This document shows, in pieces, positions 12,123-64,000 of a DNA stretch of 64,000 bases; the stretch's first letter is position 1; each line of letters starts with the position of its first letter. The DNA is from Sminthopsis crassicaudata. Lineage: Eukaryota. Both the position numbers and the translations under genes were made by a program. The DNA is taken from positions 627,296,958 through 627,360,957 of the forward strand of contig NC_133617.1 in NCBI RefSeq assembly GCF_048593235.1, given 5' to 3'. The notes under the pieces are model-generated. The model was not told the DNA's origin and made no database searches. It was given only the letters and a program-made list of their open reading frames with translations.

Positions 12123-12569
12123 AACAGAGTCAGCAGGTCCAGAAGATAAAGTGACTGGAGTCCAGCACATCTGAAAAAGCAGCAGCAGAGACAAGAGCTG
12201 AGAGTCCGAGGAGAAAAAAGATCCAGAGTAGCAGAAACTAGCAGCCACTATGTATCACATTTGGAGTGGTAAGATAGGAAACTGATTTCAACCACTGTCT
12301 TCACTGTCTCTAATTATGAACCCTGAGAGAGGAATAAGAATCTGATTCCTTTCTCATGAGCCACAGATTAGGATGATTAGGATTCATCTCTGAACCACAT
12401 CTGGAAAGATAACTGGGAGACGTTTTAGAAATCATCAGGAAAAGGATGACACCATTCAGAAATATGTTATCTAGCTCTATTTCAGTTTACTCTATTATGA
12501 ATAATAAACTATAAGATCATAACATGTCTCCAAATCTATAGATACAATCTGCAGTGAAATGGGAAATAG

Positions 12570-49824: not shown

Positions 49825-51113
49825 ATGGAGTCCTTGGCAGTGGCCGGTGCAGCGCTGGAGCCCGGGGAAGGGGAGGTGACGTCCGGCCTGGAGGCTTTGG
49901 CTGTGGAAGACCCCGCCGGGGCCCCTTCCCGGACGGACTCGACTCCGGAGGCAGAGGAGGAGGGGAGGGAAAGAGCCGGGGAGGAAGTCCAGGTGGAGGT
50001 GGAAGCGGAGGAGCCCGCTCTCGAAGAGGCTCGGGTAGAACCGGCAGGTACGTCCGAGGAAGAGGAGGAGGAAGACGAAGAAGATGAAGGGAAAAAAGAC
50101 TGGTGTGTGCCTTGCAGCGACGAGGAGCTAGAGCTCCCCCGGGACGGAGAGCCCTGGATGCCGCCCCCTGCGGAAATCCGAAAGCTCTACGAGCTGCTGG
50201 CCAGCCAGGGCACTCTGGAACTGCGGGCGGAGATCCTGCCCCGCAGGCCCCCCACTCCCGAGGCCCAGAGTGAGGAGGAGAAGTCCGACGAGGAGCCGGA
50301 GGCGGAGGAGGAGGAGGAGGAAAAGTGAGTGCGGCGGCCGGGCTCGGGAGGGAGAGGGGTGAGCACCTGCGGGCGGGCCTCGCGCCGGGGCTGGGCTGTG
50401 CAGGGCAGGGAGCTGAGGCAGCCGCAGTTAGGGGGTCCTCAGCTAGGACGTGAGGCCGGGTCTTCTCTCGGGACTCCCACTCCTCTAAAGCAGGACTCAG
50501 CATCCCCAGCGAAGGGCCGGAGACCGAGGGAGCTACCGAGCAGGGAGGGAAGGAAGGGGCCGAGAGACCCAGAAAGCGACCCCCCTACTCCTCGGGGTGT
50601 TTAACCGCGGAAGCTGCCTCAGCGCTCTCTCTCGTCCGCCTCAGACCGCACGTACCCACAGAGTTTGACTTTGATGATGAGCCGATGACGCCCAAGAATT
50701 CCCTGATTGACAGAAGACGTACCCCAGGTACGGCACTGGGGAGAGGGCGCGTGAGGGGTGGGGGGGGAGGGGGAGGACCTGGCATGGTGTGGCGCTCCCC
50801 GGCCGCGGTGGAGTCGGTGTCACTGACCTTAGCTGCTGGCCCTCCGGAGCCCCGGGCGCAAGTGGGCGCGAGGCGCGGGGTCCTCAGCCTTCCCCTCCCG
50901 TGCGCTCGTCTAGGGAGCTCGGCCCGGAGCCAGAAGCGCGAGGCCCGCCTGGATAAGGTTCTCTCCGACATGAAGCGGCACAAGAAGCTGGAGGAGCAGA
51001 TCCTCAGGACGGGCCGAGACCTCTTCAGCCTGGACTCCGAGGAGCCCTCGCCCTCGAGCACTCCAGTGCGACCGAGCGGAGGCGGGCTCTTCCTGAGGCA
51101 GAGGAAATACTGA
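49825..51113 (+). CDS. PAGR1: PAXIP1-associated glutamate-rich protein 1, 260 aa
   Basis: Exons 49825-50324, 50645-50727, 50914-51113 (783 nt). [81 protein letters not shown], ends RQRKY; AATAAA at 51269-51274. Confidence 0.95.
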
Positions 51114-51604
51114 CGGCGGGGGCTCCCCCCCGAAGCCCCCTGGCGCGCGCGCTTGTTCGCGGCCGCTGGCCCGGGAGCCCGAGGAAGCGTGGGGGCCGAG
51201 CGCGTTTCGGTGGGGGGTCTGTCCCGCGCATTGCGTTCTGGGTTTTTATACCAGTAGTTAAGTGTCTGAATAAAGACTGTGCACTCTGCCTCGGCACTTC
51301 CCTCCGCTCCGGGGCCGCGGAGGCTCGTCCGGCGGAGAAAGCCCCACGCTCCGCGGCTTCGCCGCTCCCTCCCCTTCCCCTCCGCGAGCTGGACTAGTGA
51401 GCCCCAGGATTCCCAGGAGATGGATGACCGAGACTCTTGACCAAAACTTTGGCTCTTCCTCCCAGACTCCCAAAATCATGAGTGTGAGAAGTGGAGCCCT
51501 AACAGCCGAGAGCTTCCCCGCGGAGGCAGCGCCTCAACTCGCCCCTCACTCCATGGGCCCTTTAAATGCTCGGGTTCCACCCCTCCCGGTCGGGCCCGAG
51601 CTGC

Positions 51605-51723
51605 CAGGAAGTCTATAAAAGCCGGCCGGGAGGAGGCGGGCGGGGGAAGCTCCGCGACTCTCTAGGCATGAAACGTCGGCCGCGCAGACCGCACCTCCTG
51701 CCCAGTGGCTCCGACACCCCCTC
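51605..51723 (+). promoter_or_regulatory. MVP: Putative MVP promoter and first exon
   Basis: ETS caggaagt 51605-51612, TATAAAA 51614-51620, GC box; donor CTC|GTAAGT at 51723; second strong donor CAG|GTGAGT at 51893. Confidence 0.6.
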
Positions 51724-54700
51724 GTAAGTGTTCTCTGGCTCCTGCTTCACACGGCCCTCTGCCCCCCTACTTTTCTTAAGGAGCCTGGGCGGGGTGGGAG
51801 GATAGACGTCTCTGTGACCCGAGGCCGGAATCCTGGCAGTGCCCGGGAGGCCGGAGAAAGTGTAGCAAGCAGCAGCCGGGAAGGGGCCCCCAGGTGAGTT
51901 GCCCCCGCCCCTTCTCCCCTTCCCCAGTGGCTAATGCCGTAGCCCTCCCTGTAATGGATTCGGTGCTATCTCCAGGGCGGTGCTCTCCTGTTCTGGATAG
52001 GGCCCCTGGAGGAGTGGGTGTGTGCTGAGGGTGAGGGCCTTGGGGGTGCACAGAGAAATCCCGACCTGCCGGGTCTGTAAAAATGACCTCCTAAGGGAAG
52101 GGCCCATCGTCCGGCCTTTATAGTAGAAGAGCTTCCCCCGCGTCTAAGGCGCCAGTTTAATGCTGCTCCCTTTCTCTGTCCTTGGGAGACACTTTTGCAC
52201 TTGGCTCCCCGGCACTCTGTACCGGCCAGACTGAGAAGGAATGCACTGTCTGCCCATCAAGCTCCTGTTCTCCCCTCTCCTAGGAGGGGGTCCCGCTTTG
52301 GGGTCAGCCTCAGGGCTGATTTTAGCAGTCACCCCAGCTAACTTCTTCCTCTTAAACTTGACCCCAAATGGAGCTGACTAGGGAGATTGTCACTTCATGC
52401 TTTTGTATGTCTGTGTAACTGTATTCTCTGAGTTCAGGGTGATATTAGGAAATCCTCTAGAATACTCCTCTGCTCTAATTTTACAGTTTCCTTTATCAAT
52501 CTTTGGCCCACAATCTGGGCCCAAGTCCTCCAAGCCAAGAGTTGTCCCTGGACCCACCCTTTTAATCAAGGTCTCTAATGGTGACTCATTCTGGCTTTCT
52601 CATTGGGTTAGCCCAGAGGAAAAGCAGGAAGTAAAACCGATGGAAATCGAAAGGGCTTTTAGAAATCATATAACTGCATCCTGGGAGGGCCCTTAGAGAT
52701 TATAACTCTCCTTTTGCATATAAGGAAATATCTAAGAAAGAGGAAAAAATATATTATATTCTGACTCGTACTCTTCACCACAATCTCCTCAACAAGTTTC
52801 TCAAGGGTTTCTCAAATCTTAGTCGTCTGATCTATAGCCAATAAGAGGTGTAGTGGGTAGAACTGGGAACTTACTGAGTTCAAATATGGCCTCAGACCCT
52901 TAATAGTTGTGTGAGCCTGGGCACATCACATTACTAATCTCAGGCTCAATTAATTGTATTTTCCTCAGAGGGTGATTCTTCGTTATATATTAAGTATAAA
53001 AAGCTATTGCTAGCTGTAATAATTTGTTTTTAAATGGAACTGCCTGCTCCCAGAAATAAAAGCATATTGAGATAAATGCTATCAGGTGCCCCCAAAGTGT
53101 CTATTGTGAATGTAAAGATGAGGTAGATGGGATGTAATATCTTTCAAAGGCAAGTTATAAACAAGATATTATTAAAAGAAGTTCATGGATCTTTCAACAA
53201 AAGTTTAAAAAAGCACCTGTTGTGTCCTGGGCACTGGGACAGAGCATGAGAGAGCTACTCCAGCATAAAAGATGAAGTGGATTGGGAGTCAAGAAACACA
53301 AAATACCTATTCTGTGCAAGTACTGTGTGCTCTAGATACTAATGGGGGAAAAGTTCTTGATCTTGAGGGATTCCCAGGGGCAGGGAAAACAACTACAGAG
53401 TAAATTGGAGGTAGCATTGAGGAGGACTGGAAAAGTCCCTTGTGAAACTTTTAGGGAATCCAGGAGACAGATATGAAGAAGGATTGCATACTAGACCAAT
53501 GGGAATAGCCAGTGAAAAAGCTTAAGTTCAAGAGGTGAGTGTCTTATTCAAGGAAGAGGAAAGAGGTCAGTGTCTACTGAATTTTAAAATTAGAAGTGAG
53601 TAAAGAAGATTGAAAAGGAAACAGTTTGTGAAGATCCTTAGAAGCCAAACAGAGGAGCCCTGGAAGAAATAGAATTAGAATTGGAATAGAACCATTAGAA
53701 TTGGGGGAAGGAGGTCACACTTGTACTTTAGAAAAATCATTTTGATGATTGAGTACAGGATTTACTGAGGTGGGAGAAAACAAGAAGTAGTGTTATACTT
53801 GATAGTAAAAAGTAAATTAGTAAAAGGAGAGGGGAGAGAAAGATTGAGTTTTAAAAGTCTATGGGACGGACAATTCTAGATGTTCTGTAAAAAGATGGAG
53901 ATGAGGGTAACATTTGTTAGCTATGTTACCCTAGGCTGTGTTGGTGATGGGCCCTTTTCCTTAAAGGGAATATCTCTTCCTCAGCAAGATGGGGGGTAAA
54001 TGGTTCCCAGCAGTATAGGGGTGAATCTTAACTTAAAAGAATTTGAAATTGATAGGGAAGCTTGACCTTTGGAACAGTCTTCTGCAAAAGCTAAGGTACT
54101 GTCCCCTGGGGGGAGGAGAGGAGGTCTGAATCCTTTCCTGATTCTGGCTGATTTCAATTAAAACACTGTGATGGGGGAAACCTGAAATAACTGAGAAAAC
54201 AAAGGTTTGAGCTTCCAAGTATATCAGTTTATTAAGCAAAGCATGTCAGTTGCATGCCAGATCAGAACCAGACTTCCCCAGCTTGACCCTGGACCCTAAA
54301 TAGAAGGGAGATATATTAAAAGAAAACAACAGGATATAAACTAGGATTCAAGATTAGGTAATCTGATTTCTAATTGGAAGAAAGATAAAGGGTTTTTAAA
54401 CTAGGCAGGGGAGAATGAATGGGTACAATTTCCTAAAATCAGGGAAAGAGGTTTCCCCTCTGCCCTAAGTGTCTATATTCAGTCAAAGAAAAAAGAAACA
54501 ATAACTCTTGGACCAGTACTGAATCAGTTTTCAATTTGCTTTAGTCATATAACTATGAGAAAACTCCTTGCATTAGTCTTCAGGTCTGACTGGGTCAGTA
54601 TAACTTGGTCCTTAGTTAAGGGTCTCTAAGCAGCAGATAGAGATAGTCCAGTTTCCCAGCAATGAAGGGCTAGGTTTCAGTAATGCAATAAGTAAATAAT

Positions 54701-55345
54701 AACGCAATAACGTTTTTTCACAAGAAAAATTGGACTAAACCCATAAATGAATAGAAAGGGAAATGAGCCAGATCCAGACTTGTCATAAAATAGTGTGTGG
54801 TTCATTCCATTTCCATATTCTGTGTGTCAGTTTCTTCACTTGTCAGATGTGAGGGTTGAATTCCATAGCCTCAGAAGTCCTTTCCAAATAATAAATCTCT
54901 GAGCCTGTGAATCTTAGCATCATAGTTTGCTGTTACATATGCCAAACGAAAGCAATATTTCAATATGAATGCACTGATGAAGTACCAAGTGCCATGTGAA
55001 ACTCAAGGAGGACAATTGAGGTAAATGGGGTAAAACTTACACAATTTTCATTGTCTTTGAAATGGGCATTAATGGAGGAATAGGGATTCAACAGACTAAG
55101 AGGGACAGAGAAAGCATTCTGGGCATAGGAAACAGTGTAAGCAAAGTATTGGTAGTGAATGAGTAATGAATATTTGGGCTGCTGCCAGATAATGAAAAGC
55201 CTTGAATAACAGAAGAATTCAGGCTTTACCAGTATGAAACCATTGAAGACTTTTGAACAGAGAAAGTGACCTATGGTTATAGAGGTGGAGGAGAAAAAAA
55301 CCTTAGAAGTCATCTAGTTTAACCCCTTTGTTTTTTGTTTTGACT

Positions 55346-55349
<4 letters not shown>

Positions 55350-55380
<31 letters not shown>
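55350..55380. repeat. (TA)n microsatellite
   Basis: About 14 TA units. Confidence 0.95.
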
Positions 55381-55381
<1 letters not shown>

Positions 55382-56441
55382 CTTTATAAATCATTTTGGG
55401 AGAAAAAAATCAGCAAAAGGGAAAACCATGAAAAAGATTTTAAAAAACAAAAAAGAAGTGAGCATAACATGTATTGATTTACATTCAGTCTCCCTAGTTT
55501 TTTTTCTAGATGCAGATGGCATTTTCTGTCCAAAGTCTATTGGGATTGCTTTGGATCACTGAACCCTGAGAAGAATCAAATCTGTCATAGTTGATCGAAC
55601 AGTCTTGCTATTATTGTGTACAATGTATTCCTAATTCTGCTTGTTTCAATCAGCATCAATTCGTATAAATCTTTCCAAGCTTTTCTAAAATCAGCTTGTT
55701 CATTATTTTTTATAGAACAATAATATTCCATTATCTTCATATACCAAAACTTGTTCAGTCATTCCTCAATTGATGGACATTTACTCATTTTCCAGTTCTT
55801 TCCTATCACACATTTTTACACATGTCCCTCCTTTATGATTTCCTTACAAATTCCTTTTTTGTACAGATGAGTAAACTGAATCCTAGGGAAGTTAAGTCAC
55901 ATAGTGAATGAAGATTCAAGCCAACATGTTGAATCTCAAATCTAGCCATCTTTCTTACTACTCTAACCTTCCTTCATGAACCATCAGTTGTGCCTAAGAT
56001 TATTTTGGTATTAGGGATTCAGCACTCAGAAGAGAGAGACAAATTTAGTTTAGGAGTTCTTTTTTTTTTTTTTTCCCCCTATGAAGTAAGTCCTGCCCCC
56101 CCCCCCCCACCAGGTAGGGAATTCCAGAGATCAACCCCTCTCTTTTCCCCCTTGCCTCTTAGAAAAACTTCTGTCCCACTTTTGGAATGCAGCCAAGGCA
56201 ATACTTGGAGAAAGTTTATGTCTCTAAATGTAGAGAGAAAGAGCATATGAATAAAATGAGCATACAGCAAAAAAAATTTTTAAAAAGTCCTAAAAAAAGA
56301 ACAAAATAAAAATCCCTAATTAAACATCTAAATGAAATCCTGAAAATCAAAGAAGAAATTTAAAAAATTGAAAGTGAGCAAATAAATAAAATGCAACTAC
56401 TTTTGTGGGGGGAAATGGTTAATTTGATTTTTTTAATTGTA

Positions 56442-56938
56442 TTTTGTTTTTTGCTGAACACCACTTAATACTTGAGGTTAAGTGACTTGCCCAGGATCAC
56501 ACAGCCAGGAACTATTAAGTGTCTGAGGTCAAATGTGAATTCAGGTTCTCTTGACTTAAGGGCTGGTGCTATATACTACACCAACCAGCCTGCCCCTAAT
56601 TTTATTTTAAAATTTTAAAAAGAAACCAAATTACTAATATCAAATGAAAAGGGTGAATGTACCACCAATGAAAATTAAATTAAAGCAACTATTAGGAGTA
56701 ATTTTATCTAATTATATGCCAGTAAAATTGACAATTTCAGTGAAATGGATGTCTATTTACAAAAATATAACTGGGTTAAGAAAAAATAAAATCTTAAATA
56801 ACCTTTTTTTTTTTTTTTGAGGCAGTTGGGGTTAAGTGACTTGCCCAGGGTCACACAGCTAGGAAGTGTTAAATGTCTGAGGTCTGTTTGAAACCAGGTC
56901 ATCCTGACTGAAAGCTGTTGCTCTATTCACTGTGCCAC
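56442..56938 (-). mobile_element. Two adjacent antisense WSINE1-type SINEs within old L1 sequence (about 56442-56596 and 56804-56938)
   Basis: Reverse-complement CORE ggttaagtgacttgccca...cacacagc and T tails; flanking L1 ORF2 remnants extend to about 57560. Confidence 0.8.
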
Positions 56939-58235
56939 AATAACCCTATCTTTAAAAAAAAGTAATTGAACCAAACCATTCCTAAGAAAAAATCCCCAAA
57001 ACCAGATGAATTCACAGATGGGAAAAAAAAATAGATAAAGAAGGTACCCTACCATTCCTTTTATGACACAGATAAGGTTCTAATACCTAAACCAGGAAGA
57101 GGAAAAAGATTTATAGACCAATTTCCATAAATTTTAAATTAAAACACTAGCAAAGAGATTATTGTAATGTATCACAAAATCATACACTGACCACACAGAA
57201 TTTATATTAAGATTATAGGACTAGTTCACTATTAGGAAAATAGTAGAAAGCATAAAAATCAATGGAGACTTTTAAAAAATAAGTAGTGTCCAAAATCAAG
57301 AGCAAGTATTGTCTGTAATAGGTATAAACATTGTTTCCCCAATAACATCGGGGTAAAGCAAGGATGCCCGTTATCACCATTATTATTCAATGTTATACCA
57401 GAGATGCCAGGAAAAAAAATTAAAGGAATAAAAATAGGCAGTGAAGAAATAAAATCATAATTCTTTGCAGATGTTATGATGATATACTTAGAGAACCCTA
57501 GGGAATCAACTAAAAAAACAGTTGAAACAATTAGCAAACTTTAGCAAAGTTGCAGGATATTGTTGCAGGTAAACTCAACTGAGATAAATTGAGGTATATA
57601 CTACAAGCAAAATCACTTTATTAACAGTGATACATATAAGTGGATTAGATTGGCTACTTCAGTAAAATCACTAACTCCAATGAAAAGGAGGTTACTCTCT
57701 TTATTGACATTCAGGAAATAAGGGGTCTTGATAGTCAGGACACATTACAATTGGCTATGCTAAGAAAAGTGGGCTGATATTTCAGGTGAAACTTAGTTTC
57801 CTGTTGGAAGTCAATTTTTCATTTTTATGACATTGATTTGCCATGCTCAGCACCTTTCAACTTATTTTTGGAAAAGAGCATTCATAATATTTTGTTCTGA
57901 GTTTTCAGAATAGGATATAAATCTTTAATCATTTTAATTTCTTCAACCTGAATGCCATTCTCGGTACCTACTTTTACAATGGAGTCACCAAATATCAAAG
58001 TTTCTTTTAGCTTAGTTTGAAGTTCACGTCTGCAGTGGATGTCAATGTATTAATTATCCCACTCTCTAAATGGTCTTTTTTTGCTTATGGTCATTAAGAT
58101 AATCTACAAGATAATATGACCAAGTATCCCAGGAAATTTTGATTTTTACTTATTTTGGGGCACCTAATGAATGAAACAATCTCTGATTCTTTTGTCTTTT
58201 GGAGAAGAATATATTTGCTATCCTTCCCATTAGCT

Positions 58236-58422
58236 CAGAGGTTCTCAAACTACAGCCCGCAGGCCAGATGCGGCCTGCTGAGGATGTTTATGTGGCCCGA
58301 GTTATGGCAAATGGGCTGAGGGTCGGAGACAGTGTGAGTTTTTGTTTTTACTATAGTCCGGCCCTCCCACAGCCTGAGGGACAGTGAACTGGCCCCCTAT
58401 TTAAAAAGTTTGAGGATCACTG
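58236..58422 (+). mobile_element. Non-autonomous hAT DNA transposon (OposCharlie1/OC1-type MITE), 187 bp
   Basis: Perfect 8-bp TSD cattagct (58228-58235, 58423-58430); TIRs CAGAGGTTCTCAAACT / reverse complement CAGTGATCCTCAAACT (13/16 match); subterminal gagggacagtgaactggcccc...aaaaagtttgagga as I recall for OC1. Confidence 0.88.
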
Positions 58423-59334
58423 CATTAGCTTAACACTTTTGTTTCAGTTTGTGAGACAATCACTATATGATATGAATCAGCTTATCCAAAAGTATTTCAA
58501 ATCATTGCCATTGGACACACAATCCCACATTTAGAATATCTACTCGAGTTCTTTTTAAGTTTAAAAGTTGTATTTCTTAGCAGCTTCTGCCCCCTTTTTT
58601 TATCACTCTACTGTAAGTGTATTTATGTGAGGGAGCCACACAAGAATGTTTTATTTTCTCTTTTGAGGTTGACTTGCCAGAGAATCTTGTCACTTAGTGG
58701 GCAACCAGCTGGTGATGAGCCTTCCTATATGTAGTAGCTACTTTGGTACGCAGTCTGTCACCAAAACTGTATGTGAAGCTTTTCTAGTATAGCAAAGTCT
58801 TCCAGAACTCAAGATTTATTGGCAGAACCTTCCAAGAACCAAGATCAGCTCCATGAAATAAGACAGTAGAGAAGGATTTTGCATAGTTTTTTTATTATTT
58901 TAAAAACTTGAAATTGGACTAGCTAAGAGTAGGCTTGAGAGAGTTTATGTAGGGTTTTAAGGCTAATTAGGAGTCTCATTGGTCATCTAATCCATACCTG
59001 AACAGAAATTTCCTAGACAACATCCCCAACCAATAGTCATCAGTTGGAAGAATTGCACTGAAAGAGAGTCACCTGCCTCCTGCAACAATCCATTCCTTTT
59101 TTGAGCAATTCTTAATTGCTAAGGAGTTTTTACTTAAACTAAAATATGCTTTCCTGAACTTAGCTGTGGTTCCTCATTCCTCCCTTTGGAGCCAAGCAAA
59201 ATAAGTCAAATCTTTGCCTCTTCCACATGTACTTTGAATTCTTACAAACATACTGACATATTACAAACAAACATGTCAAGAAGTGGCAGGAGATGGGGTG
59301 GTCTTAAATAGAATGAAGAGTACTCATTTTCTGC

Positions 59335-59454
59335 TTTTTATTTTGGTTTTGGGTTTGTCAAGGTTAAATGACTTGCCCAGGTTCACACAGGTAGTAATTG
59401 CCTAAGGCTATCTTTGAACTCAGGTCCTCTATCTACTATGTCATGTAGCTGCCT
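59335..59454 (-). mobile_element. Partial WSINE1-type SINE
   Basis: ggttaaatgacttgcccagg...tttgaactcaggtcctc...tagctgcc. Confidence 0.75.
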
Positions 59455-60399
59455 TTTTTGTTTTTGTTTTGCTGGTCTGTGTTGAAAAAGGAAGAAACCA
59501 AAGTTTTTACCAAGAGCCTAAAATCCTTTTTTCTTATAAGCTTTGGTTCTCTCCCTCCCTTCATTTTTCTTTGTTCTCTGTGGCTCCTTCCCTATCATTT
59601 ATTTGTTGTTTTTTTAAGCATCTATTTCCAATATATTTATATTTTCATAAATCATATAAACATACAGCAATAGTAGTAATCATATATTATTTTTAATATA
59701 TTTTTGTTTTTCCAAATACATGTAAAGATAGTTTTCTTTGGAAAATATTGTGCTCCAAATTTTTCTCCCTCCCCCAGCCTCCCATAGACAGCTGCTAATG
59801 CAATATATGTTAAGCATATGCAATTCTTCTAAACATATTTCCATATTCGTCATGCTGCACAAGAAAATTGGGTCAAAAGGTGAAATAAAATCAACAATAA
59901 AAAATTAAAATGCTATGTTGTAATCCACATTCAGTCCCCACAATATCTCCCTGGATGCAGAAGGCTCTCTCCATCTCAAGTCTATTGGAATTGCCCTGAA
60001 TCATCTCATTGTTGAAAAGAGCCACATTGATCTTCACATAATTTTGTTGCTGTGTACAATGTTCTCTTGGCATCAGTTCACACAAGTCTTTCCAGGCTTT
60101 TCTGAAACCAGCCTGGTTGTAATATTCCATTACACTCATATGCCATAACTAATGCAGCCATTCCCCAACTGATGGGACTCAATTTTTAGTTCCATGCCTT
60201 TACAAAAAAAAAGGCTGCTTATAACTATTGTTGCATAAGTAGGTCCTTTTCACTTTTTGGGATGCAGACAGTATCCAGAAGAAACACTGCTGGATCAAAG
60301 AATATGTACAGTTTGTCATTCATTTTTATTCTTTCTCCCCACACCAGAGATCCTGTATTAACCACTCCTGATTCCAGCCATCTTGACTCTGAAGTCACC

Positions 60400-61031
60400 A
60401 TGGCAAATAAGGGAGATTCTATCATCCGAATCCCCCCATACCATTTCATCCACGTGCTTGATCAGAACAGCAACGTGTCTCGGGTGGAGGTTGGACCCAA
60501 GACCTACATCCGGCAGGACAATGAAAGGTTGGTATTGAGTCCTGAGAAGGAAAGAGGTAGAGAAGAAGGAAAGTCTGGGATAGGAAGGGATAGACCTTGT
60601 TGATGGGGCTCTCCAGATCACTCATTCTGTCTTCATGTCCAGGCAAGAGTAAATCCTCATTCGGGCCAGAATGTGGCAGGCAGACAGCTTTTGGTCGATT
60701 GGAGGCCTGTATTCCTTGCTGGAACACTCTTTATCTGGATAACTGAGCTTACCTCTCAGGGCTGTGTCTGGCTGGGTGGGAAGGCTTAGAGGAAGATCTT
60801 GGCAATCCCTCATATTTCCCTCTGTTCCCCAGGGTGCTGTTTGCCCCGGCACGGATGGTGACAGTCCCACCACGACATTACTGCATTGTAGCTAACCCTG
60901 TAGCCCGAGATAAAACGGGCTCTGTGCTGTTTGATGTGGCTACTGGGCAAGTGCGCCTTCGTCATGCGGACCTGGAGATCCGGCTGGCCCAGGACCCCTT
61001 CCCACTGTACCCAGGAGAGGAGCTGGAACAG
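60400..61031 (+). CDS. MVP: Major vault protein, first two coding exons (gene continues beyond window)
   Basis: Exon 2 acceptor at 60347, Kozak gtcaccATGG at 60400, coding 60400-60527 ([43 protein letters not shown]); exon 3 60833-61031 ([26 protein letters not shown]...[14 protein letters not shown]). Confidence 0.96.
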
Positions 61032-62116: not shown

Positions 62117-62286
62117 GTTTTTGTTGTTGTTGTTGTTTTGGGGTTTTTTGGCTGAGGCAGTTGAGGTTAAGTGACTTGCCTTAGTATCACACACTTAGGA
62201 AGTGTTAAGTGTCTAAGGTCAGATATGAACTCAGGTCCTCCTGACTTCAGGGCTGGTGCTATATCCACTTCGACACCTGGCTGCCC
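62117..62286 (-). mobile_element. WSINE1-type SINE inside an older antisense L1/HAL1-like remnant (about 61550-62860)
   Basis: Near-perfect TSD ctggattgcagag / ctggattgaagag; (GTT)n tail. Confidence 0.85.
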
Positions 62287-64000
62287 TGGATTGAAGAGTT
62301 TTATAGCCCTTTGGGTACAGCTCCAAATTTCTTTCCAAAATGATTAAATCAGCTCACAACTGCATCAATAGACATTAATGTCTCAGTTTTTCCACATTCC
62401 TTCAACATCCAACATTTTCCTTTTTTGTCACATTAGCTACTCTGATAGGTATGAGGTAATACCTCAGAATTGTTTAAATTTGCATTTCTTTGATAAATGA
62501 TGACTTAGAGCATTTTTTCATGGCACTATAGATAGCTTTGACTTTCTTGTCTAAAAACTGCCTCTTCATATCCTTTGACCATTTATCAATTGGGGAATGA
62601 CTTATATAGAGAACTGAGTCAAATTTATAAGTATATTTGAGAAATGAAGATTTATCAGAGATACCAGTTGCAAATTTTTCCTTCACTTTTCTGCTTTCCT
62701 TATAATTTTGGTTAAACTGATTTTGTTTGTGCAAAAACTTTTTAATTCTATATAATTAAAATTTCTATTTTATATTTTGTAATACTCTCTATATCTTCTT
62801 TAGTCCTAAATTCTTTCCTTATCCATAAATCTAATAGACTATTCCATGCTCTCTTACTTTGCTTAATTCATCATTTTAAAATGAAGGCATTGGACCAGAA
62901 TGGCATTAATGTCCCTTCCCATTGTTAGGCATCTGTGAGTCTATGACTATGCTGCACAGAATAGTGGCAGAATAAATGTATTTAGAGCAGACCATATTGC
63001 CTACCCCATTCTTTTATCCTGGATCCCCTTTCCCTAATGTGTGATTTATTATTAATTTTTATGTATTATTACAATCTTTCCCTCCCCCTAATTTCCATAA
63101 TTACTTTTTTCCTCAGGTAGAAACATCTCACCTCATATTACTATTTCTGAAGGATTTTCCTAAAACAATAACTTGTTTGGGTTAACTGGCTCCTAACCCT
63201 CTCCAGTGACTTCTGCATAGTACTTCTATCTCTGGGAGACATACTGATGTGGTAGAACCTAAAGTAATGTACATAAAGTAGGAGAAGCTTGAATTGGAAA
63301 TTACTTCACCCTTAAAGATTGAGTCAGCAGGGAGATGAGGTCTCCAAAGCCATCAATTTTAATCTAATCAGAAGCATTTATTAAATACTTGCTGTATGCC
63401 CCGCTGGGCACTAAGTATCTGGAATATAAAGACCAAGATGAAATATGACTTGCCTTCAAGAAATGGGAGGCTGAGTGTTTGATACTAATGCAGTGGGATG
63501 ATTATGGAAGCTGGGGAGAGGAGGAGGCAGCATTTAGACTGTGTTGTTGGGGAGGGGAGTTTAGGGTGGAGGAAGCAAGGTTGAGCTCCTTGCCAACAAC
63601 AGTTGTGGGTTCACAGGAGCCCTCAGTGGAGATAGCAGAGACCTTTAAAGCCGTATCTATTGCAGCCTCTGGTTATATTCCAATGGGAACACAACATATA
63701 TGTACCTATAGGGATAAACAAATCAAATACAAATTAACTGTGTGGAGGTAGGGAAGCTTTAGTAGCTCAGGGGCCTCATACAGAAACTGCCTGAGTTTAC
63801 AAGGAAATAAGTTTCAAGAGGAAGAGCATTTGAGGGGGAAGTGAAACAATCAGTACAGGCGTATGTGATGACAGAGCATCATGGGCAGTGCAACAGTAAA
63901 TTCCCCTCTAAGATATTCAGCTAGAAGTTTTTCCAATAATGAGGCAATTCCTTATTTTGTTTTTTTCCCCTTTATTTTTTCTCAACTTTATTAGAATTTT

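Follow-up and report, generated by a model that had tools for sequence, protein, structure and literature searches.

An upstream start codon and a conserved first-exon donor in marsupial MVP predict an optional, weakly constrained N-terminal extension of the major vault protein

Introduction

The first exon of MVP, the gene for the major vault protein, in Sminthopsis crassicaudata, the fat-tailed dunnart, raises the question of whether a marsupial vault subunit can be started from either of two in-frame AUG codons, and, if so, whether the additional N-terminal segment has a dedicated function. The window, by which we mean the whole stretch of 64,000 nucleotides (nt) that was analyzed (NCBI RefSeq assembly GCF_048593235.1, contig NC_133617.1, positions 627,296,958 to 627,360,957), contains the MVP promoter and first exons, in the gene order PRRT2, PAGR1, MVP as judged from open reading frames (ORFs). 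All features described below lie on the forward (+) strand, and positions are those of the window unless a locus handle such as L003 precedes them. A first-pass annotation of this stretch proposed that a choice between two donors in exon 1 switches MVP between a subunit with a basic N-terminal extension resembling a nuclear localization signal (NLS) and an mRNA repressed by an upstream open reading frame (uORF).

On balance, we consider it somewhat more likely than not that a short mRNA with two in-frame starts gives rise to both 907- and 871-residue MVP, and that some lineages can also form a long-leader mRNA carrying a uORF. A TATA box is followed by the AUG at 51668, and a conserved GTAAGT donor 56 nt further on would splice exon 1 in frame to exon 2; the resulting short mRNA, taken as the default, would carry the cap-proximal start at 51668 and the canonical start at 60400. 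Initiation at the first AUG would yield a 907-residue MVP with a 36-residue tail, basic at first and then acidic, rich in Pro, Ser and Thr, and this tail is expected to be flexible and to sit at the waist of the vault, on its inner side. Where ribosomes scan past the first AUG, they would produce the usual 871-residue MVP. The tail would be dispensable and weakly constrained at best: the bilby is without the AUG, and in Dromiciops the AUG would open only a 12-codon uORF. The leader may be lengthened in dasyurids, koala and wombat by use of a second consensus donor 120–180 nt downstream, and in this long form the AUG would open a 19-codon uORF ending approximately 220 nt before the main start, possibly as an optional dampening device analogous to the human long-leader variant. 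The sequence anatomy, its conservation, the annotation and the codon statistics are observed; where transcription begins, how often each donor is used and that either AUG is translated are inferred.

A predicted short MVP transcript with two in-frame start codons

The upstream ATG lies at 51668-51670 in the context CTAGGCATGA and is the only ATG within 51600-51893. Together with the following 53 nt, it forms the coding part of the short exon 1 (51668-51723; 18 codons plus 2 nt), which is assigned from sequence and conservation. The context of this AUG is middling (G at -3, A at +4), and that of the canonical AUG at 60400 is perfect (ACCAUGG). The first donor (CTC/GTAAGT, 51724-51729; hereafter donor 1) contains an in-frame TAA at 51725-51727, which closes a 19-codon uORF, MKRRPRRPHLLPSGSDTPS, starting from ATG 51668 whenever donor 1 is unused. 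An optional exon 1 extension of 170 nt (51724-51893), predicted from sequence to form the long leader and poorly alignable and indel-rich between species, ends at donor 2, a GTGAGT after CAG (51894-51899). A rough position-weight score gave 8.5 bits for the donor at 51893 versus 2.3 bits for the donor at 51723, whose exonic side is weak.

An acceptor AG at 60346-60347 places the start of exon 2 at 60348. The exon 2 leader (60348-60399) is open in the frame of ATG 51668, and it is 52 nt long and open in five species. In the short form, 56 and 52 nt add up to 108 nt that run without a stop codon into the canonical MVP ATG at 60400, giving an extension of 36 residues. ATG 51668 stands 5' of both donors and is thus present in the short and long forms, with the in-frame extension in the short form. 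These positions had already been listed in the first-pass annotation (ATG at 51668, donors at 51723 and 51893, TAA at 51725-51727, acceptor at 60348, canonical ATG at 60400) and were all reproduced, and its statement that use of the 51893 donor would turn ATG 51668 into the start of the 19-codon uORF agrees with the sequence.

The probability of finding an in-frame open leader in a single genome was estimated as approximately 0.14, i.e., 1/3 for the frame multiplied by approximately 0.41 for an open frame after shuffling of 105 nt, and such a leader in one genome alone is within chance. The same ATG, 56-nt spacing and GTAAGT donor recur in five further marsupials, which makes the arrangement more than a coincidence.

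When 51640-51893 is joined to 60348-60399, as in the long form, the reading frame that runs on into MVP lacks stop codons from 51640, if not earlier, up to the canonical ATG and has no ATG in it. This open frame is probably a by-product of GC richness.

Conservation and public annotation in marsupials

Eight marsupials were compared, namely dunnart, antechinus, Tasmanian devil, koala, wombat, wallaby, bilby and Dromiciops. The upstream ATG is kept in seven of the eight, the bilby having GTG instead, and all eight have a donor at the 51723 position (CGTAAGTG invariant in seven, GTGAGT in the bilby). The distance from ATG to donor is 56 nt in six species and free of indels, with indel-rich flanks on either side. 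In Dromiciops, a 2-nt deletion causes the ATG to open a 12-codon uORF that closes inside exon 1. The canonical ACCATGG is invariant in six marsupials. Donor 2 was present in five of seven species (dunnart, antechinus, devil, koala and wombat) and absent in wallaby and Dromiciops. Because a donor stands at the 51723 position in every species and donor 2 is absent in two, donor 1 is, as judged from these alignments, ancestral and probably constitutive. The first-pass annotation had taken the donor at 51893 as the stronger, main one; the rough score favors it, yet its distribution among species does not agree with that role. The conservation across marsupials that it had proposed as a check held for the ATG, for donor 1 and, in six species, for the frame; it failed for donor 2 and, in bilby and Dromiciops, for the frame.

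In the bilby, the exon 2 leader (L008:19152-19202) has a deletion of 15 nt, a multiple of three, though the upstream ATG is gone in this species.

Homologous loci were fetched via PAGR1 orthologues, and the ranges in their gene tables are coding ranges, as indicated by PAGR1 running from ATG to stop, with the longest product only. The annotated MVP coding start falls on the homologous ATG in Tasmanian devil (L001, position 11814, 908 residues), tammar wallaby (L002, 12072, 907 residues), koala (L004, 12168, 907 residues), antechinus (L006, 11962, 905 residues) and wombat (L007, 12173, 907 residues). The dunnart record (L003) lists 941 residues from a coding start at 12325, which equals the ATG at 51566 of the window, in frame and 102 nt 5' of ATG 51668. 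The bilby record (L008) has the canonical length of 871 residues and a coding start in exon 2, and in Dromiciops (L005) no MVP coding range begins in the 10-kilobase flank 3' of PAGR1 according to the gene table.

Since 907 minus 36 and 941 minus 70 both give 871, the gene models join 51723 directly to 60348 with nothing between. The in-frame extension of the short form, as proposed in the first-pass annotation, is borne out to this extent: the coding ranges and lengths in six marsupial genomes fit only this junction, and products as long as 871 residues plus the extension argue against an additional, frame-breaking exon between 51723 and 60348. An N-extended MVP isoform is already predicted in the public annotation of six marsupials (dunnart included), and a literature search found no paper discussing these models. 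The earlier statement that no N-extended vault subunit is known finds no support, as public records already list extended isoforms and basic N-terminal tails are frequent among animal MVPs. The gene models show that annotation pipelines built the 51723-60348 junction; translation is beyond their reach.

The promoter upstream of exon 1

A promoter block, CCTTTAAATGC...CCCACCCC, is conserved at 51559-51583 in an alignment of seven marsupials and contains the ATG at 51566-51568. It is followed by a segment (51603-51621) comprising an element, CCAGGAAGTC, and then the TATA box TATAAAAG at 51614-51621. The TATA box is kept in six of the eight marsupials, 45-56 nt 5' of the upstream ATG (54 nt in the dunnart), and is degenerate in the South American Dromiciops and lost in the bilby. 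From its position, transcription is predicted to start near 51645, approximately 20-25 nt 5' of the AUG.

The box TATAAAAG is kept in marsupial MVP promoters, unlike the human one, which is TATA-less according to a review (PMC7916137); in the bilby (L008:11384-11800), both this box and the upstream ATG are gone. In the sloth, the promoter block CCTTTAAAT...CCACCCC...CCGGGAAGT was recognizable, L010:13559-13583 being the positional counterpart of window 51559-51583, and 3' of this block we found neither a TATA box nor an ATG, nor any otherwise alignable exon 1. The combination of TATA box and ATG is thus not common to the sloth. In the echidna, nothing aligned to MVP exon 1 or its promoter. The pattern CCTTTAAAT...CCACCCC...CC(A/G)GGAAGT (window 51559-51612; L010:13559-13615) is common to marsupials and sloth and lies at an equal distance 3' of PAGR1, and the common block may represent an ancestral therian MVP core promoter. 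Two candidate donors approximately 160 nt apart were also seen 3' of the sloth block (CCG/GTGAGG at L010:13629 and CAG/GTAAGA at L010:13789), with no ATG between them; a first exon with tandem donors may, from these candidates, be older than marsupials.

Evolution of the extension

Pairwise ratios of nonsynonymous to synonymous substitution rates (dN/dS) ranged from 0.23 to 0.72 in the extension, versus approximately 0 to 0.03 in the canonical part. The corresponding summed ratio of proportions (pN/pS) was 0.50 in the coding frame, the two remaining frames giving 0.94 and 1.18; column shuffling gave P = 0.033 for the low value of the coding frame, a nominal figure from non-independent pairs and hence a weak hint. 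These codon statistics, together with the losses in two lineages, point to a tail that is tolerated and at most weakly constrained rather than to a dedicated signal.

A basic cluster at residues 2-7 of the extension is kept in five of six species and weakened in the koala (KRWQRQK). The strict core of a monopartite NLS is K-(K/R)-X-(K/R), and no window of KRRPRR, KRRQRR, RRRPRR or KRWQRQK fits it, so that these peptides are described here as a basic cluster only. The richness of the tail in Arg and Pro is the default yield of CpG-island sequence. The first-pass annotation had attributed a possible NLS or cargo function to the tail. Given that its codon positions behave almost neutrally, that the lineages of bilby (ATG lost) and Dromiciops (frame broken) discarded it, that the conserved donor is donor 1 and that the extended form is already annotated, a dedicated targeting function appears unlikely.

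Alternative explanations

Several observations weigh against the production of 907-residue MVP from the short mRNA. Variable sites are distributed over the three codon positions as 11/11/14 in the extension versus 0/1/16 in canonical exon 2, i.e., the extension has no third-position bias. When the observed differences were placed at random, all five sequences stayed open in 35% of the trials (P = 0.35), and neutral retention of the open frame is thus likely. The in-frame arrangement was lost in two of eight lineages (bilby and Dromiciops). Each of 18 public sequencing runs matching the stretch contained at least 88% of the words in 51560-51960, a segment that covers parts of promoter, exon and intron, and none of them is recorded as RNA; they look DNA-like and are uninformative on splicing, and some may be chromatin or methylation libraries from work on the dunnart. 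In protein collections, neither a short-fragment search with exon 2 nor an exhaustive search of representatives recovered marsupial transcript fragments; all matches came from placentals and other animals and were ORFs of unspliced exon 2. Finally, annotation pipelines favor long ORFs, so that an annotated extension is no proof of translation.

In the same connection, apparent protein matches to the exon 2 leader were rejected as intron-derived chance extensions.

The explanation that survives best beside a mixture of two subunits is that the upstream AUG has little importance for translation and that the N-extended protein is an artefact of longest-ORF annotation. In that case, the core promoter and 5' splice site would be what is conserved, the majority of transcripts would have their 5' ends at the AUG, 3' of it, or so near to it that scanning ribosomes skip AUG 51668, and essentially only 871-residue MVP would be made. 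The lack of third-position bias, the likely neutral retention of the frame and the a priori chance of an in-frame open leader are all in accordance with this explanation, as are the perfect and invariant ACCATGG at the canonical start and the fact that bilby and Dromiciops manage without the extension. Furthermore, if transcription starts approximately 30 nt past the TATA box, the leader before the upstream AUG would be only about 15-25 nt long. Against it stand the retention of the ATG in seven of eight species with an indel-free 56-nt spacing amid indel-rich flanks, and the lower pN/pS of the coding frame compared with the other two frames. In addition, the dunnart gene model begins 102 nt 5' of ATG 51668, so that at least one transcript model contains this ATG. 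We regard annotation artefact as a tenable but rather unlikely account of the locus.

The regulated switch proposed at the outset, in which donor choice would decide between a functional N-tagged vault subunit, with an NLS-like tail altering cargo, RNA binding or localization, and a canonical mRNA repressed by the uORF, seems improbable. Both donors have a good intronic consensus, five of six species retain the basic residues at 2-7, and the N-termini of MVP face the vault lumen at the waist; there is also a human precedent, as far as its title conveys, for leader splicing with a repressive uORF. However, donor 2 is missing in wallaby and Dromiciops, which would restrict any switch to certain lineages, the basic cluster is weakened in the koala and falls outside the strict monopartite NLS consensus, and an Arg/Pro-rich peptide is what a CpG island yields by default. 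The geometry of the 19-codon uORF also counts against a switch, since a uORF ending approximately 220 nt before the main AUG usually permits reinitiation.

Least probable of all is a 941-residue protein as the true dunnart product, made from ATG 51566 on transcripts beginning 5' of the TATA box. The dunnart gene table does start there (L003:12325), and the 102 nt between this ATG and ATG 51668 contain no stop and keep the frame. But this ATG lies inside the conserved promoter block, 5' of the conserved TATA box; devil and wallaby lack it, antechinus, koala and Dromiciops have it out of frame, and wombat has it in frame, though without annotation. With the poly(A) signal of PAGR1 a mere 300 nt or so upstream, the annotated start is probably due to a 5' end that is rare or arises by read-through.

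PAGR1, MVP exons and neighboring features

The order PRRT2-PAGR1-MVP is common to seven marsupial loci according to their gene tables. The first PAGR1 exon in the window matches Sminthopsis crassicaudata PAGR1 (XP_074138855) at 100%, and ORFs place the PAGR1 stop codon at 51111-51113, with a poly(A) signal AATAAA at 51269-51274. Because PAGR1 ends at 51113 with its AATAAA at 51269, the MVP promoter falls within the following 350 nt or so. PAGR1 (window 49825-51113) has two annotated dunnart isoforms of 260 and 270 residues. The distance from the poly(A) signal at 51269 to the MVP TATA box is only approximately 350 nt, which makes read-through into MVP exon 1 plausible.

The identity of MVP is supported by the domains PF01505, PF17794-6 and PF11978, which are listed for the product in the gene tables of the dunnart record and six other marsupials, and by 71-97% identity of exon 2 to other MVP N-termini in the protein search. 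The canonical start ACCATGG and the remaining exon 2 occupy 60400-60527, as assigned by protein identity, and the canonical protein opens with MANKG. Exon 3 (60833-61031) was assigned by tblastn, with 85-100% identity to antechinus, wallaby and bilby and a 100% self-match to the dunnart record L003. In MVP intron 3, window 62130-62290 contains what we take, by eye, to be a marsupial element resembling a short interspersed nuclear element, with the motif ...GTGACTTGCC...GAACTCAGGTCCTCCTGACTTCAGGGCTGGTGCTATATCCACT.

Significance and comparison with known systems

If the long protein is translated, marsupials would offer a natural experiment in decorating the inner vault waist, as engineers do with fusions of 12 to 31 residues, and, beside the human uORF variant, would provide a second case, differently wired, of MVP being controlled through its 5' leader. 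A far-reaching version of this idea, in which the 907-residue form is a major vault subunit in most Australasian marsupials and as many as 78 flexible basic-acidic tails per vault, lying within the waist, alter the contents of the vault, for example by direct binding of vault RNA, or the ease with which its halves separate, must be considered highly unlikely. For now, the analysis is of value chiefly as a correction: the extended isoform had been annotated before, it is the first donor that is conserved, and the tail is nearly neutral and was discarded in two lineages.

Natural N-terminal tails are widespread among animal MVPs. We surveyed 122 full-length animal MVPs, ranked by similarity to a 921-residue invertebrate MVP and with no marsupial MVP among them, and located a conserved R-I-P-P motif in 111 of the 122, at residues 8-26 in 108 proteins and at residues 38-55 in three. 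The tails before the first conserved MVP strand are often rich in Lys and Arg, notably in fishes and echinoderms, and range from 8 to 55 residues across animals. The long marsupial form would place R-I-P-P at residue 46, i.e., after a 45-residue tail longer than all but two of the 111; furthermore, the natural tails are constitutive, whereas the marsupial extension would be optional. By this comparison the extended tail would be long, yet no new kind of feature.

The first-pass annotation had correctly placed the MVP N-termini at the waist inside the vault (PMC7916137). N-terminal fusions of 12 (CP peptide) and 31 residues (NS5A) still assemble, with the added residues inside the vault at the waist, and a pVI fusion was likewise engineered (PMC7916137). 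The marsupial tail would be comparable to these three fusions as an N-terminal segment at the inner waist.

It was also right about the human gene, for which a splice variant of the MVP 5' leader containing a small repressive uORF has been reported (Holzmann 2001, FEBS Lett 494:99, PubMed 11297743, cited in PMC3875758 and PMC3483550). As far as can be read from its title, the human variant resembles the predicted marsupial long form, in which alternative 5'-leader splicing would produce a longer leader with a small uORF before the main start. The marsupial AUG differs in standing 5' of both donors and hence in both forms; a uORF confined to the long variant, if the title of the human report is taken in that sense, is not found in the dunnart.

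The closest counterparts are the predicted N-extended MVP models of marsupials themselves, which are computational and have the same ATG, the same junction and the same 36-residue extension, the longest dunnart model adding 34 residues from ATG 51566. More generally, alternative N-terminal proteoforms arising from an upstream in-frame start and leaky scanning form a known class, of which PTEN-L is an example. Marsupial MVP would likewise have two in-frame starts on one mRNA and a long and a short protein differing by an N-terminal tail; unlike the general class, its upstream AUG is brought into frame by a splice, and its tail shows marginal coding constraint only. The marsupial MVP case departs only modestly from kinds of 5'-leader control and of N-terminal proteoform diversity that are already known.

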